Positions 1 to 30,500 of a DNA stretch of 64,000 nt are shown here, one piece after another. The DNA lies in contig NC_134034.1 of NCBI RefSeq assembly GCF_964204645.1, forward strand, positions 10,924,962-10,988,961, given 5' to 3'. A program made the position numbers and the translations under genes. Under the pieces are notes generated by a model that was not told the DNA's origin, searched no databases, and was given only the letters and a program-made list of their open reading frames with translations. Each line of letters opens with the position of its first letter. Within the stretch, counting starts at the first letter, position 1. The stretch comes from Tubulanus polymorphus. Taxonomy: Eukaryota; Animalia; Nemertea.

Positions 1-323
1 CAAAGCCTAAGGAGACAGATGGGGTGAAGATGGATTCTGAAACCGAGGAGGAGGCAAAGGAGGTGATGACAGATTCTGAGACTGAGGAAGAGACGAAGGA
101 AGGGATGACGGATTCAGAGACTGATGAGGAAACAGAGGAGGTGATGAGTGACTCAAATTGGGAGTTTGAATCAGATTCTGATACCGGGGAGGGCTTAGAA
201 TTAGAAGTTGAATTTGAGGACGAGGAAAATGTGGATCCGACAAAAATGACATTTGACGAATTGCACCCTTGGCAGCAGTATACTGAATTTTCTAATAAAA
301 TATGGATTTTTACAAACCGTTAA
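1..323 (+). CDS. 3' end of a zinc-finger-cluster paralog (acidic tail and conserved C-terminal motif); 5' part lies outside the window
   Basis: 13-aa acidic repeats (EVMTDSETEEETK) followed by ENVDPTKMTFDELHPWQQYTEFSNKIWIF, homologous to the C-termini of the ORFs at 6117 and 9016. Confidence 0.75.
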   Translation, partial: KPKETDGVKMDSETEEEAKEVMTDSETEEETKEGMTDSETDEETEEVMSDSNWEFESDSDTGEGLELEVEFEDEENVDPTKMTFDELHPWQQYTEFSNKIWIFTNR

Positions 324-1016
324 TTGTAGATTGATTAAAAGGTTTTAACCAGGCAGAACACATTATACAATGTAGATTTGATTTTACTGAAATTGTTGTA
401 CTAAAAACTTTGTGGTCATGAAATTTGTTTGTACAATGGAATTATAATAAAAAGAAATAATTTGCTTTGACATAAATAGTTAGCTCTTAAAATATTGTGA
501 TCGCTGGATTTGATCGTGGGGACGATTCGCGATGGGTCAAATTTTCTGACGTTGGACAGTTGCACACGCACAGCGGCCATATAAAATCGCAATAAATCGG
601 GATTCGAACCCATGTTGATTGACCAGAGAGGGCGCTTTAATCGAAAATCCTCCTTCAAAACAAAATACACTTTAAATCATATGAGTTAAACTGCAGCGTC
701 CCGTGAGAGGACCCGGGCCTGTGACGGGACATGGGTCCTCTCACGGGACAAATGTAGAATTCTTACATGAAACGTCGATTCCAATGCTAGCGGTTTCGAG
801 TCTCAATATTCTTATGTATTCTGTCTATAACGGTTATGAATAAATAAATTCAACTATCGATTGTAATTATTACATTTTCCATTTTGATTTCATTTATAAA
901 TACATAAAGGCCTACCGAAAAATTCTAATTTACTGCAGGGCCAGGGGGACAATATGGGGATATGAATGCACGTTTTTCACGCAGGATTTTACAACGGAAC
1001 CCGCGATTCAAGTTAC

Positions 1017-2982
1017 CGTCCCGTGAGAGGACCCGAATCAACACACTGTCCCGTGAGAGGACCCGATTTTAAATGCTGTCCCGTGAGAGGACCCGGTTCA
1101 ACACACTGTCCCGTGAGAGGACCCGATTTTAAATAATGTCCCGTGAGAGGAGCCACTTTTAAATGCTGTCCCGTGAGAGAACCCGATTCAACACACTGTC
1201 CCGTGAGAGGACCCGATTTTAAATAATGTCCCGTGAGAGGACCCTATTTTAAATACTGTCCCGTGAGAGGACCTGGTTCAACATTCTCTCCCGTGAGAGG
1301 ACCCTATTTTAAATACTGTCCCATGAGAGGACCCGATTCAACACACTGTCCCGTGAGAGGGCCCGATTCAACACACTGTCCCGTGAGAGGGCCCGATTCA
1401 ACACACTGTCCCGTGAGAGGACCCTATTTTAAATACTGTCCCGTGAGAGGACCCGATTTTAAATGCTGTCCCGTGAGAGGACCCGGTTCAACAAACTGTC
1501 CCGTGAGAGGACCCAATTTTAAAAACTGTCCTGCGAGAGGACCCGATTTTGAATACTGTCCCGTGAGAGGACCCGAATCAACTTACTGTCCCGTGAGAGG
1601 ACCCGGTTCAACACACTGTCCCGTGAGAGGAACCGATTTTAAATAATGTCCCGTGAGAGGACCCGAATCAACTTACTGTCCCGTGAGAGGACCCGGTTCA
1701 ACACACTGTCCCGTGAGAGGACCCACTTTTAAATACTGTCCCGTGAGAGGACCCGAATCAACTTACTGTCCCGTGAGAGGACCCGGTTCAACACACTGTC
1801 CCGTGAGAGGAACCGATTTTAAATAATGTCCCGTGAGAGGACCCGAATCAACTTACTGTCCCGTGAGAGGACCCGGTTCAACACACTGTCCCCTGAGAGG
1901 ACCCGATTTTAAATACTGTCCCGTGAGAGGACCCGAATCAACTTGCTGTCCCGTGAGAGGGCCCGGTTTCAAATAATGTCCCGTGAGAGGACCCGATTTT
2001 AAATACTGTCCCGTGAGAGGACCCGATTCAACACACTGTCCCGTGAGAGGACCCGGTTCAACACACTGTCCCGTGAGAGGAACCGATTTTAAATAATGTC
2101 CCGTGAGAGGACCCGAATCAACTTACTGCCCCGTGAGAGGACCCGGTTCAACACACTGTCCCGTGAGAGGACCCGATTTTAAATACTGTCCCGTGAGAGG
2201 ACCCGATTTTGAATACTGTCCCGTGAGAGGACCCGAATCAACTTACTGTCCCGTGAGAGGACCCGGTTCAACACACTGTCCCGTGAGAGGAACCGATTTT
2301 AAATAATGTCCCGCGAGAGGACCCGAATCAACTTACTGTCCCGTGAGAGGACCCGGTTCAACACACTGTCCCGTGAGAGGACCCACTTTTAAATACTGTC
2401 CCGTGAGAGGACCCGAATCAACTTACTGTCCCGTGAGAGGACCCGGTTCAACACACTGTCCCGTGAGAGGAACCGATTTTAAATAATGTCCCGTGAGAGG
2501 ACCCGAATCAACTTACTGTCCCGTGAGAGGACCCGGTTCAACACACTGTCCCCTGAGAGGACCCGATTTTAAATACTGTCCCGTGAGAGGACCCGAATCA
2601 ACTTGCTGTCCCGTGAGAGGGCCCGGTTTCAAATAATGTCCCGTGAGAGGACCCGATTTTAAATACTGTCCCGTGAGAGGACCCGATTCAACACACTGTC
2701 CCGTGAGAGGATCCGATTTTAAATACTGTCCCGTGAGAGGACCCGATTCAACACACTGTCCCGTGAGAGGATCCGATTTTAAATACTGTCCCGTGAGAGG
2801 ACCCGATTCAACACACTGTCCCGTGAGAGGACCCGATTCAACACACTGTCCCGTTAGAGGACCCGATTTTAAATACTGTCCCGTGAGAGGACCCGATTCA
2901 ACACACTGTCCCGTGAGAGGACCCGATTCAACACACTGTCCCGTTAGAGGACCCGATTTTAAATACTGTCCCGTGAGAGGAC
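1017..2982 (+). repeat. 30-bp tandem array, ~65 units (left arm)
   Basis: Constant CTGTCCCGTGAGAGGACCCG plus a 10-bp variable part from a few variants; 660-bp higher-order duplication. Confidence 0.97.
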
Positions 2983-24554: not shown

Positions 24555-27500
24555 TCACGTCGTCACTTCCCACAATCCCTCCAGCGTAAATCCATCTCGT
24601 AATTTCTCGATAGCGAGACCGAGTTCCTCCGAGTAGACGGCGTCGCGATCGCGTTCTTTATTCCCGTCCGCGAAATACGCCTGTAATTATCGAAAAAACA
24701 TCGTCGTCGTTAATTATTCGACCGGCAGACGTTAGAAATTCGAATATTCGAATTTCGAAATCGATGATTCTTACGGCGAACGCGTCCGATTGGTCGTTTG
24801 TGTTTTCGATTTCGACGTCATCTTGAACCGGTTCGACGGTCATTACATCGAGATCTTGAGGCTAGAAAAATAAAAAACATCCGACCTCTTAAGAAGCGTG
24901 CGTGCACCCTCCATCGGAGAAAACGACTACAGGGTGAAATGAAGAAATCCCACACTTCGAATTAAATCATAGGATAGAATTTATTATTTTGAAACCACAA
25001 CGTTTCGGCTGTTGACTAACAGCCATCATCAGGTGGAATGATTGATAGATGATCATCATTCCACCTGATGATGGCTGTTAGTCAAAATAATAAATTCCAT
25101 CATATGATTTAATTCGAAGTGTGGGATTTTTTCATTTATCTACAGTATACACGGATTAAAGTGTTTATTCGACAACTGACTACAGGGTTCTTACAGATCG
25201 GGATAAATCTCAGAGAATTCCAGATTTAGTGAGCAAAACCCACAATTGGATATTACCAATGATACCAACAGCTTATTCGATCAGTTTTCGAAATTTTGAC
25301 TAAACTTCATCAGAGAAATGGAAATTTGTGGGTTTTGTTCATCAATTCTAAAATACTGACATCAATATCAGTCTCTACCAGTCATGAATTCCAGATTTAT
25401 TCCCAGATTTATCCAGGAATTCCAGATTTGTCCACGAAAAATCAGCGAATTCTGACACTTTTAATCATTCAAATTCAGGGGAGTCTGGGAATTTGTAGTC
25501 ATTTGTTGTTCTTGCTAGTGTTGAGTGACACAAAGAACCTCTATATAAGAAACAGCCCTCACTGAGGATATCTCCATAATATAATCAGGGAATTTTTTGC
25601 CAAAGCAAGGATTGTCTTAAATCCTAAAACCAATCTGAAGTTGTTACGGTGGATTTGTCGCTATAGAACTAAAATGATGTTAGACAGGTCTAAACCTAGT
25701 CAGTAACCTGTCTGTGGTTAAGTTTCACGATCGGATATTTTCACGTTGGTATAAGCCCATCCGATCATAAAAAGCTTACCACCAACGATTAGGTAACTAA
25801 CTAGTCTAAACCCTGACTATATGGAACGGGCGCCACCTGTCAGAACCTGCATGAACTACGAACATCAGGAATAATCGTTAAGGGTCATTCATTTATTACG
25901 TACGTATTAGGGGGAGGGGGAGGGGTCAGTGCAATTGCGTACTGTAATGCTTAATTTCTGTGAAAAGATGGCCGATTTTGCGTACAGAGGGGGAATGGGG
26001 TTGAAAAATTCAAATTTTATGCGTACGTAATAAATGAATGATCCCTTATAAGTTACGTTACTTACGGCTTCTTCGGACTCGTATTCGATGCCGAATATCG
26101 GACACGCGCTGTATACGCGATGTAAACTCTGGATCTCTTTACAAGCCTCGTGTAGTTTCTCGACCGGGTCGATTCGAAACCCGAGCACGTAACCACCGCT
26201 CTGTACGGAACTCTCTATCACTAACGCTAAACCGAACTTAGACTCGCGAACTTTCACCGATTTCTGTACGAAATGAAGAAATATTTCGATAAATTCGATC
26301 GATGAAATGTTCGTGAAATATACCGCGAGAATTGTTGAATCAGTTAAAGTAATATCGAAATATTCACGATGAAATAATAAATATGAAATGCTACGATTGT
26401 TGAAAGACTAAAAAGTTTTAAAATTTCTAAAACTCAGAATACTAGAAATATTTCGGATGGTTGCTACCACCCATCTACCAGATTAAAATGTCATTTCTTT
26501 GCCATTTTAGAATGAAGAAGGGTCGTAGGAATATCCCGAAATATTTCTAGTATCTCATACTGTTGTTTAGTCTTTCAACAATTGTGGAATTTTACAGTTG
26601 TAAGAATTGCTGATATGAAATCGCACATTAACGACTATACGCTAATAGTCATCGTCAGGAATACTGTATAAAAATGTCAGTATTCCTGAAAATGACTATT
26701 AGGATATAGTTGAAACGTCGAATAAACACACAGCACAGGAAAACAGTTTTTGAGGATGGTTATGCGAGTAGAATACTACTGACAGTTTTTGAGGATGGTT
26801 ACGCGAGGAGGATATTACCGACGGTTTTTGAGGATGGTTACGCGAGGAGGATATTACTGACAGTTTTTGAGGATGGTTACGCGAGGAGAATATTACTGAC
26901 AGTTTTTGAGGATGGTTACGCGGGGAGGATATTACCGACAGTTTTTGAGGATTGTTACGCGAGGAGGATATTACCGACAGTTTTTGAGGATGGAGGAGGA
27001 TATAACTTACAATCTGTAAATATGGAATGCTAACGTTGAAAGATTCGTTCATATTCGCGTGCCAGACAACGCGCACATTTGTCACAAAAAACGTGCCTAA
27101 ATTTCCCTGCAAAAGTAAAACAAATGTATCAAGAACCCTTTCTTAAGATTCAGAGGTTTCTTTGCTTGGACTGATTTCGTGATATTTGATTAGAAGAATA
27201 TAAAAGAAGTGAAGCAATTGTCGAGACAAGATTTCAAGTAATTCTAGGACGCTTAAAAATAATCAACTAATACAAGTAAGTAACAGTTTAATAGTCTTTC
27301 GTGCCACCAAAATTTGAAACAGTTCAGTCTGAAATAAGAAAATAATGTGATCAAACAGAAAACAGTGATCACTCACTAAACATCAAAGCATTAATTACTA
27401 CCTACAGATCAAAGACTGTAATTACTAACTTTATTGAGTGATCACTCCACATACAATCATCATGGTACTGATTAGATCAGGCAATTAGCTAATTAACAGA

Positions 27501-30500
27501 GTGATCAGTCCACACTTGAAGATCAAAGAGCTGACTAGATCAGGTAATTAACTAATTAACAAGAGTGATCAGCCCACATACAAACATCTAAGAACTGATT
27601 AGATCAGTCAATTAGCTAATTGATTAATTACTTCCAATAATAAAGGAACAGTAAATCACTGATTCAGTGATAATTACTAATTCACTTTGATGTTTAAATC
27701 AAAGAGTAACAGATTAATTGATGATGTATTGTTGTACGCGGTTGTCGGGTATAAATACCCCGGACTTGCAGCTGGATTCAAACATTCTACAATGGAACAT
27801 CGAACAGCGAACAACCAGAACGAGAAGAGTTTATTCCTGCAGCCGGAGGTCGTCGAAACGATGAACGCCGAAGAAACAGTCGAACGTCTGTTCAGCGTCG
27901 AGACGAAATTCGTGAAAGCCGCCAAACAGATCGTCGTACTCGAACGGAAAATACAACATATCGTCGAACGCAACAATCGTTACCGCGGCGACGCCGAGTG
28001 TTGCTCGGTTCGTATTCAACTTCTGTCGCTCGGCAACACGAAGGACGCATTTTATTTGTACGCGCAGAAAAAAGCGGCCGAAATTCATCTGTTGAAACAA
28101 CGTCTCGTCGACCTGTGCTGAAACGGCGAACAACTCCTCGAGCAACGGTTCTTTTTAGAACCATCTCAACGTCCCAGAATCAGTCGGTCAAGGCTCTCAA
28201 CTCTGCTTAACTCAAATTATGGTTCTTTTTAGAACCAAATCAGGTCTCGACCTCATATTATCCTCAAAGGTTCTTTTGAGAACCACTTTTTTCCTTACGT
28301 AGCTAAAAATGGACCTGATCGGTTCAGAATATCCCTTAAAACGAATGTAGGTAAAAATGTCCCGGGAAATAATGTCCCCAGAAAAAATGTCCCGGAAAAG
28401 ATATCAGTTAAACAGTTAAGCATGAAGGCCCAGCACTAGTAATGGGGTTTAAAATGCAAGTCAATAGAATGGAGGCGCTAAGACCAAAAATATGGGTCTC
28501 TTAAGAAAAAGTTTTCAGAAGTGTTTTTGTTTTGAATGAAAACTCACCTGGTCGCTAGATAGATTCCACGCGCCGAATATCTGATCGTAGATTTGTTCCT
28601 GCGGCAGCAGACGCAGCTGTTTATTATTGATTAAAGCGCCGCGTAGTTTCAGCTCACGGTACATTTTAGACGTTTCGTACGCTCTACGAGAATAATCAGT
28701 AGAGAGGGTGATAATATTAGACAAAACGTCAGTTTTAGAGATTGGAGATTGCAGGTGAACCCACTCACCTGTGAACCGCTATCACCGTCGTAAACAGTCT
28801 CGGCGAACCAGGAACCTAAAATTGAATTCAAAATATATTTTCTCAATTCAATCGATTTCTGTGAACATAACATACCAGGAACCTCCAGGAACCTCAAAAT
28901 GAATTCGCTTTTCAAATCGGTTAAGTTTTCATCAAAAATTTCATTCGATTCGGATTGAAATGTAGGGATGCGGAAGACCGAGGGACTACTAGCGACACCT
29001 GGTGGATCCTCACTCGCCATAAGCGGGCATCCTTGCTCGCCATCGTAACAATGATTTGAATAATTTCGGATTTTTTTCCGAATTTCGATCCAAAAACGTA
29101 CCAGATTAGTGAATATGAACTCAAATCTGGTGTTGTTACATTTTGTAAGGACGTAAAGAGCTTCGACTGTTCCTCGAATTTTCTGAAATTTTTAAGAAAA
29201 AAAAACACAAAATTGACAGTGTGTACGTACGTAAAGCGCCCTCTGGTGATCAATAGTCTAACTATCCTTACCGATTGAGCTGTTTTTGTAGTTATGTTCA
29301 GTACACAATTGTAACCAATCGCTGAAATTCACAAACTTGAACTATCTATTTATCTGTATGAATTTATAGCGAGAAATTTTCTGAGAAGGTTTTGTGACTT
29401 ACACAAATTCACTCGAATCATTGTGTGTGAATGCCATATTATTCGCAGATTCGTTACCAACAGTTGACCTGAAATATAACGAAAACTCACGATTCAAGTC
29501 AGTTCTAAAACGGCGGGGCCCGGTCGCGGAGACGCGACGCAAAGTTGCACAGACGTGACGTAAGTCCAAAACTTGTCTTAAATCTGACGACTTATAGCCT
29601 AAGATTGGCTATAGAAATGTTGGAAATGACTAATAGCCTAAGATTGGCTATAGAAATGTTGGAAATGACTTATAGCCTAAGATTGGCTATAGAAATGTTG
29701 GAAATGACTTATAGCCTAAGATTGGCTATAGAAATGTTAGACATGACTTATAGCCTAAGATTGGCTATAGAAGTGTTATGACCTTAGGCTGGTCATAAAT
29801 TTCTAATCCTTGACTGCGCAACCGTACCAGGCCGGGTATAAATCAATAAGGGTCCATTCGTTCCACTGTTGACCGTTGGAACTGGTTCCTGGTGGTCCAG
29901 TGAGCCGAGGGCCGGTCCGGTTCACTAACCTCTATCACCGTTATTGCCTTTTGTATCTTCGACCGCGTCCAGTTTATCGATCAGTTTTTCTCCCGGTCGC
30001 ATTCGCATTTGCCTAAAACAACATAAAAACAGACGCGTCTAAATCACCGGGCGTACAGTTAAAATAAAGCGCAGGGCCAGTTTAACAGACTCGTATTACC
30101 TTTAACCCGTGGGCTAATTCAATTCATTTTCAATTTAGTTAGCCCCCGGGTTGAAGGTAATACCGGTCTATAAAACCGGGCCGTGGATATTTTTGATGCG
30201 GTCAGTTCAAACATAATTCATACTTACCAGCGATGCACAACACAATTATGTACGATTAGTTTTTAAAAGGAATCAGAGTTTTTTAATCTAAGCACTTTTG
30301 AATATTCCATAGATATCGTGTTACAACATGCTATATACCTGTAGAATTAATGAGGATTAAAAACACCTTAAAAACCATTCATTAGATTTTCTCATCCCAA
30401 TTTTAATTTTTTTTTTAGAGAAAGAAATTTTACGATTCCATAACTGGGTCAGATTGGAGTGAGAGAGGGAGGGAGAGAGAGATAGAGGATGGCATTTCTA

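Follow-up and report, generated by a model that had tools for sequence, protein, structure and literature searches.

A non-histone gene built like a histone gene, with a predicted histone-type 3' processing signal, nested in BBS5 of Tubulanus polymorphus

A compact gene inside an intron of BBS5

The stretch of DNA analysed here, called the window, comprises 64,000 nucleotides (nt) of the nemertean Tubulanus polymorphus (contig NC_134034.1, positions 10,924,962 to 10,988,961). Within it, an intron of the gene BBS5 houses a small intronless gene on the opposite strand, and this gene is followed by three hairpins resembling the stem-loop (SL) that ends replication-dependent histone mRNAs. Our comparisons support the view that this is a non-histone gene built like a histone gene, whose 3' signal looks functional rather than accidental. 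The features of the locus, in window coordinates, are as follows.

27011–27105, minus strand: BBS5 exon on the low-coordinate side of the host intron (Pfam BBL5, E 4.3e-16; in a spliced RNA contig)
27436–27621, plus strand: tandem repeats, three copies of a 63-nt unit (repeat family D1, 76–86% identity)
27750–27757, plus strand: TATA box TATAAATA, read from the sequence, 42 nt 5' of the ATG
27792–28121, plus strand: intronless open reading frame (ORF) of 109 amino acids plus stop, with start context acaATGG at 27792
28547–28683, minus strand: BBS5 exon on the high-coordinate side of the host intron (Pfam BBL5, E 1.3e-17; in the spliced contig)

The host gene was identified as BBS5, on the minus strand, by Pfam BBL5 matches on three exons, each matched singly and not as a joined spliced model. 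One spliced RNA contig bridges 27105 to 28547 over the nested gene, with GT..AG borders on the minus strand. Neither AATAAA nor ATTAAA occurs from the stop codon to 28630, a position that lies inside the antisense BBS5 exon. An earlier, sequence-only reading of the window had described the TATA box at 27750, a Kozak-type ATG at 27792, an intronless ORF of 109 codons, its antisense position within BBS5 and the absence of AATAAA before the next BBS5 exon; each of these is present as described. The ORF also stands apart from its surroundings in composition: its GC content is 50% with a CpG observed/expected ratio of 2.04, against 32% and 0.42 in the intron segment 27106–27749. The ratio lies between 1.3 and 2.3 in all ORFs of the family described below, and the histone ORFs are likewise CpG-rich (1.05–1.24).

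The encoded protein is not a histone, as had been argued from the sequence. It has no Pfam match at E≤10, its isoelectric point is 8.5, and with 17 Lys and Arg against 15 Asp and Glu it is near neutral. AlphaFold2, run with an alignment of the paralogues, placed helices at residues 26–63 and 69–108 with a mean predicted local distance difference test score of 84.7. The modelled protein is thus a two-helix hairpin and not a histone fold. In a Foldseek search of the PDB, nothing reached E≤0.001 and the weaker matches were all generic helical hairpins, and the sequence search of the PDB gave only generic coiled coils. ESM Atlas features fell below recognition. The window protein alone found no match in a word-indexed database of 5.8 billion proteins, and the same kind of search with the Tubulanus alignment gave two. 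Family members share a two-helix core in which F, A, R, Q and Y positions are conserved, and a motif around EGVRxxYYEYA; the window protein differs from most of them in lacking the acidic C-terminal tail.

Expression data consisted of assembled Logan contigs from four runs belonging to a single study. Of these, run X1 has an even depth of about 32, as DNA would, and run X2 behaves as RNA, with the spliced BBS5 contig at a depth of 474. Over the nested gene, X2 contains contigs at 27739–27829 (two alleles) and 27800–28370, at a depth of about 20. The depth of the upstream intron (27169–27669) is 0–3.5, and the gene region is therefore present in RNA above the intron background. The sequence-only reading had depended on the ORF being transcribed; RNA contigs, for which the strand is not given, do cover it. 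Two sites in the ORF vary: A>G at 27799, in RNA run X2, changes His3 to Arg, and T>C at 27977, in all X1 and X2 contigs there, is synonymous (Asn).

Two repeats lie elsewhere in the intron. The 63-nt triple repeat lies 130–310 nt 5' of the TATA box, is dense in homeodomain-type motifs (TAATTA / TAATTGATTA) and is possibly a regulatory region. Similar TAATTAG motifs are also found in the promoters of the paralogues on contig C11. On the other side of the gene, 28353–28399 holds three tandem 15-nt units of AAAAATGTCCCGGRAAA, a repeat scattered over many chromosomes in at least 50 copies, and this dispersal accounts for a depth peak in the read-table bin at that position. Apart from the 15-nt repeat and the coding similarity to the paralogues, the 1441-nt host intron is unique in the genome.

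Three hairpins and a downstream element

The 3' flank of the ORF contains the following features.

28147–28162, plus strand: SL1, GGTTCT-TTTT-AGAACC, beginning 25 nt past the stop codon (Rfam Histone3, 26.5 bits)
28173–28188, plus strand: histone-type downstream element CCCAGAATCAGTCGGT, 10 nt 3' of SL1, with its CCCAGAA core at 28173–28179
28205–28215, plus strand: third motif GCTTAACTCAA, from a by-eye reading of downstream flanks
28221–28236, plus strand: SL2, a 16-mer identical to that of SL1, with poor flanks (Histone3, 18.3 bits)
28269–28284, plus strand: SL3, CAAA-GGTTCT-TTTG-AGAACC-AC, with good flanks (Histone3, 26.0 bits)

In each of SL1, SL2 and SL3, a 6-bp stem with a GG/CC base closes a 4-nt loop whose first and third bases are U. 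Their positions and spacing agree with the sequence-only reading, and an Infernal search with the Histone3 model, a check it had suggested, gave local E-values of 4.5e-5, 0.054 and 7e-5, respectively, although all three scores lie below the Rfam gathering score (see below).

The hairpins differ in what follows them. The context of SL1 reads agcaac, stem-loop, atctcaacgt and CCCAGAATCAGTCGGT. We compared it with the core histone genes of the same genome, taking one unit of the histone cluster (G000:C10, 8.36–8.43 Mb) as reference. There, H3, H2B and H2A end in GGTCCT-T[C/A]TC-AGGACC, a 10-nt spacer and CCCAGAAAG[A/G]GCC. Relative to H2A, SL1 has an identical agcaac 5' flank, a spacer of identical length (10 nt, 7 of 10 bases shared) and an identical CCCAGAA core. 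SL2 and SL3 have no downstream element. A composite pattern of the loop, 8–13 nt and CMAGAA matched 48 sites in the genome, SL1 among them, and its reversed-pattern control matched none.

To score the whole signal we used a covariance model, R1, built from 16 sites with stem-loop and downstream element in histone and unrelated genes and from no member of the gene's own family. R1 matched SL1 over its full length at 28139–28196 with 35.9 bits (E 4.6e-7 over 140 kb). SL3 scored 15.1 bits (E 0.21), with its hairpin part only, and SL2 was not matched; over the 64-kb window the model found nothing besides SL1 and the bare SL3 hairpin. By these comparisons, SL1 with its downstream element forms what looks like a complete, canonical histone-type processing signal. 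On this point we depart from the sequence-only reading, which had seen no clear U7-pairing element and had supposed that processing may be non-canonical: CCCAGAATCAGTCGGT has the histone core, and SL1 bears the genome's own histone element at histone spacing.

That reading had further proposed three functional loops, and here too the evidence points elsewhere. Only SL1 is complete, SL2 and SL3 lie past the predicted cut, and the trio occurs in no other member of the family, none of which has extra intact loops. The stretches that separate the hairpins resemble one another no more than shuffled sequence does, bearing out the dissimilarity noted earlier, and the best hint of duplication, ctcaaattat before SL2 and ctcatattat near SL3, has a p of about 0.09. 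All three hairpins share a derived T-A pair, which indicates that SL2 and SL3 are copies of SL1. The plus-strand paralogue L018 on contig C11 has a second, degenerate loop copy about 130 nt downstream, so that small local loop duplications recur. In DNA run X1, SL3 is heterozygous for T>A at 28275 (depth 20 of 41), the first base of the loop. The first loop base of the histone stem-loop matters for SLBP binding, and the polymorphism hints at weak constraint on SL3. SL2 and SL3 are most likely leftovers of small local duplications that lack a downstream element; at most, they could have an auxiliary role on read-through RNA, for example as a backup SLBP site.

Could the hairpins be chance palindromes, or a fragment of a miniature inverted-repeat transposable element (MITE) or other dispersed repeat, beside a spurious ORF? 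The 16-mer is indeed palindromic, and the dispersed 15-nt repeat at 28353–28399 lies nearby. We rejected such an origin. Across 268 Mb there are just 8 occurrences of the 16-mer, GGTTCTTTTNAGAACC, and this locus accounts for three of those; the host intron is unique and the composite control gave 0 matches. The ORF moreover has a confidently predicted fold and 1004 homologue clusters. This explanation is therefore extremely improbable, and a dispersed MITE family, which the sequence-only reading had named as a finding that would refute it, is excluded.

The third motif falls 3' of the predicted cleavage site. A motif with a consensus of about GCTTAAACCCAA lies 20–35 nt past the downstream element in many family members and not in the histone genes; besides the window gene, it is carried by L007, L006, L009, L018, L002, L008 and L086.

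A gene family with the signal, and unrelated genes that share it

The window gene belongs to a family. Six-frame searching of the genome gave about 20 paralogues, and a profile search, in which the family profile matched the window ORF with 98.2 bits (E 6.2e-26), gave 25 family members. All are intronless ORFs of about 95–180 amino acids, most with a TATA box 35–45 nt before the ATG, and the nearest paralogues carry an identical TATAAATA about 44 nt before it. Some are arranged as divergent pairs (contig C11, 1.697–1.703 Mb; contig C4, 23.82 Mb). Identity to the window protein is only 25–49%. Although protein identity is about 30%, R1 detects the 3' signal at E≤1 in about 16 of these 25, and one or two degenerate cases recognized by eye bring the count to about 16 to 18. 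The RefSeq-annotated family gene XP_074640406.1 (contig C2, 100% identity) has no stem-loop.

The ratio of nonsynonymous to synonymous substitution rates (dN/dS) is 0.22 between the window gene and its nearest paralogue and 0.13–0.25 among loop-bearing pairs. A locus with two tandem copies and no stem-loop (L022, G000:C4:2896200-2901900) has a dN/dS of about 1 between them, and this pair is probably decaying. Purifying selection acts on the coding sequences of the family, and the ORF at 27792–28121 is a genuine protein-coding gene. When the 3' ends of the family and the histone genes were aligned, the stem was 98% paired and three of its six pairs showed compensatory double changes, giving the variants GGTCCT/AGGACC, GGTTCT/AGAACC and AGCTCT/AGAGCT.

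A second full stem-loop and downstream element (R1, 46.9 bits) was observed near one paralogue, on contig C8 near 16.644 Mb (L004:1110-1169, minus). This copy sits about 330 nt upstream of the C8 paralogue, on the other strand; no obvious ORF precedes it, and it may be what remains of a divergent partner gene.

These comparisons bear on the idea that the signal is a relic, in which the family once used the histone pathway, the signal of this copy is decaying and unused, and the gene is otherwise expressed or on its way to becoming a pseudogene. The stem of the window gene is GGTTCT where the genome's standard is GGTCCT, its downstream element matches the histone one in the first 7 nt only, and its Rfam score is below threshold. 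The gene and the three paralogues closest to it, which carry mismatched loops, also form a divergent long branch. The change from C-G to T-A in the stem is compensatory, however, and is present in all three copies, and the GGTTCT stem also occurs in RING-like genes of this genome, where a good downstream element follows it. Decay also fits poorly with an intact ORF under a dN/dS of 0.22, with an R1 score of 35.9 bits on SL1 and with RNA over the gene. We consider a relic quite improbable, though less so than a chance origin.

Outside Tubulanus, an exhaustive profile search returned 1004 cluster representatives at E≤1e-3. Named members come from the molluscs Mya, Dreissena, Mytilus, Patella, Littorina and Nucella, the annelid Lamellibrachia and the nemertean Tubulanus, and all of these are annotated as hypothetical or uncharacterised. 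We examined the DNA of 12 foreign homologues, 10 of which have at least 100 nt downstream. A histone stem-loop is present in 6 of these 10, at 12–41 nt past the stop codon and mostly of the GGCTCT type, the loop of their own lineage. Histone3 scores are 41.3 bits for L090/L091, above the Rfam cut-off, and 29.9 (L089), 28.2 (L095), 25.1 (L093), 24.7 (L068) and 20.2 bits (L088) for the others. No stem-loop was found in the remaining 4 of 10 (Littorina, L072, XP_070194631.1; L073; L069; L092). Homologues had been named as a check on the earlier proposal, and most of the 25 paralogues and 6 of the 10 foreign genes do carry the loop. In the family tree, which is poorly resolved, loop-bearing and loop-less genes are interleaved, implying that the association with the loop is either old with several losses or has been gained repeatedly.

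The surroundings of three foreign members are also of note. L095 is a 1331-nt tandem unit with a 5S ribosomal RNA (rRNA) at 946–1064 (minus strand, 111.5 bits). L068 contains a U5 small nuclear RNA (snRNA) at 2142–2260 (minus strand, 89.6 bits), and its two ends share an identical 141 nt, which implies a tandem or circular unit of 2713 nt. In L089 the family member adjoins a U4 snRNA at 283–419 (minus strand, 113.5 bits). In many invertebrates, histone genes occur in tandem arrays together with 5S rRNA or snRNA genes, and the layout of L068, L089 and L095 resembles such arrays.

The signal is also found at genes of other kinds in the Tubulanus polymorphus genome. Other Histone3 hits include H1 and H2A.X-like genes and several unrelated non-histone ORFs, each of which ends in a stem-loop and a downstream element (L040-L042, L012-L014, L057-L059, L047-L049, L052, L044/L045 and L046/L050). 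They encode small RING-like proteins of three families, some with RG repeats, and Cys-rich proteins. A 328-amino-acid ORF with the signal, present in at least two near-identical dispersed copies, was read by eye as IS1595/ISXO2-transposase-like. The genome-wide scan that the sequence-only reading had suggested thus did find stem-loops downstream of non-histone ORFs (RING-like, Cys-rich and transposase-like), and, judging by these predicted signals, histone-type 3' ends in this species extend far past the histone genes. A MULE-like fragment is also among the signal-bearing loci.

Predicted processing and comparison with histone genes

Canonical histone-type processing at SL1 is, in our judgement, the probable fate of the transcript. 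SLBP would bind SL1, and the U7 small nuclear ribonucleoprotein (snRNP) would pair with the element that begins with CCCAGAA at 28173. CPSF73 would then cut a few nt past the stem, at about 28166–28168, between SL1 and the downstream element. The product would be a short, non-polyadenylated mRNA with a 3' untranslated region (UTR) of about 45 nt, and its stability and translation would be tied to SLBP, placing it in the regime of histone mRNAs (S phase, or the oocyte and early embryo). From the signal and its conservation we infer SLBP binding, U7 pairing, the cleavage site, a lack of poly(A) and when the gene is expressed. The co-option of the SLBP pathway proposed in the sequence-only reading is well supported by comparison, through the conserved signal and the compensatory stem changes, while its non-canonical processing and its three functional loops are not supported.

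Of the two factors, SLBP is present, with PF15247 in two exons (G000:C2:3287142-3287528; 46.5 and 35.7 bits). A whole-genome Rfam U7 search and pattern searches turned up no U7 snRNA whose 5' end matches. In the best Rfam match, at 28 bits (cut-off 34), the Sm site and 3' hairpin are good, and the 5' end is unable to pair with the downstream element. Three pattern searches for an anti-downstream element with an Sm site returned a dispersed repeat and single sites without a U7-like 3' hairpin. The repeat (L074-L079, e.g. G000:C2:11204492) includes CTTTTTCTGGGCAAATTTCT, a sequence that would be able to pair with the histone element. We rejected it as U7; it has an Sm-like site, but its hairpin varies in length, its copies are dispersed and it looks like a mobile element.

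That no matching U7 was found is one of several observations that weigh against canonical processing. The downstream element departs from the histone one after CCCAGAA (TCAGTC in place of AGRGCC). None of the three Histone3 scores reaches the gathering score of 34 bits; in the whole-genome Histone3 scan, the core-histone loops of the H3, H2A and H2B cluster are likewise below it, at 27.8–31.7 bits, and the threshold is therefore non-discriminating in this species. SL2 and SL3 are nearly perfect amid dissimilar flanks, which simple decay does not explain. The RNA evidence consists solely of assembled contigs, which carry neither strand nor RNA ends. These contigs start no later than 27739, which is 5' of the proposed TATA box, and continue past SL1, SL2 and SL3 as far as 28370 or beyond. 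Either at least some transcripts escape cleavage at SL1, or the library sampled read-through forms alone. From a poly(A)-selected library, nothing but read-through forms would be expected for a histone-type gene.

The contigs, uninterrupted from 27800 to 28370, past all three loops, also suggest a dual-mode gene. Its transcripts would mainly be polyadenylated downstream, the three loops would lie in the 3' UTR and bind SLBP or regulate, and cleavage at SL1 would be minor or regulated. The almost perfect retention of the 16-mer in SL2 and SL3, with flanks no more alike than shuffles, would fit such a role. The contigs themselves would also be expected if the libraries were poly(A)-selected and the gene is of histone type. 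Polyadenylation downstream would have to do without AATAAA or ATTAAA before 28630, no other member has extra intact loops, and the SL3 loop base is polymorphic. The complete SL1 signal is moreover kept family-wide, which argues for cleavage there as the main outcome. A dual mode is thus unlikely, although it is the strongest of the alternatives, and we favour canonical processing at SL1.

In human cells, crosslinking and immunoprecipitation and RNA immunoprecipitation of SLBP recovered only histone targets (PMC4604434), and histone mRNAs have been described as the only known non-polyadenylated cellular mRNAs. In the searchable literature, with subscription journals outside its scope, we found no report of non-histone (invertebrate) genes with a stem-loop and downstream element. 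What appears to be new here is a known mechanism with an apparently conserved, non-histone class of putative client genes. A wider proposal is that this lophotrochozoan family is an old client of SLBP and U7 and a second class of non-poly(A) mRNA, that in Tubulanus the pathway has spread to RING-like, Cys-rich and transposase-like genes, and that the protein probably acts with histones in S phase or early development; we regard the chances for and against this as evenly balanced. If these RNAs do end at the loop, the SLBP/U7 pathway would not be exclusive to histones across a large part of the animal kingdom, and the helical-hairpin family would be a strong candidate for a function coupled to histones. 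Transcriptomes and annotations of these animals that are based on poly(A) would then systematically miss such genes. The family would offer a natural system in which to ask what the SLBP/U7 pathway contributes beyond histone supply.

Some histone genes produce both stem-loop and polyadenylated forms, among them H2A.X, H2B transcripts (PMC3661734) and maternal Drosophila histone mRNAs (PMC11997800). The window gene resembles these in having RNA that reads through the loops, so that two kinds of 3' end are possible, but differs from their defined downstream poly(A) signal in having no AATAAA or ATTAAA within 500 nt. Compared with replication-dependent histone genes, whose processing uses SLBP, the U7 snRNP and CPSF73 (RF00032), it differs in its helical-hairpin product with no basic tail, its three loops and its position as a single copy antisense in an intron of BBS5. 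Its stem has T-A where the histones have C-G, and its cleavage and SLBP binding are predicted from sequence. In other respects the likeness to histone genes is close. The window gene is intronless, with a TATA box and short UTRs, and it shares with them the 6-bp GG-based stem, the U1/U3 loop, the A-rich 5' flank, the 10-nt spacer and the CCCAGAA core. The likeness extends to the family: some of its paralogues are paired divergently, and foreign relatives occur in tandem arrays that also contain 5S rRNA or snRNA genes.

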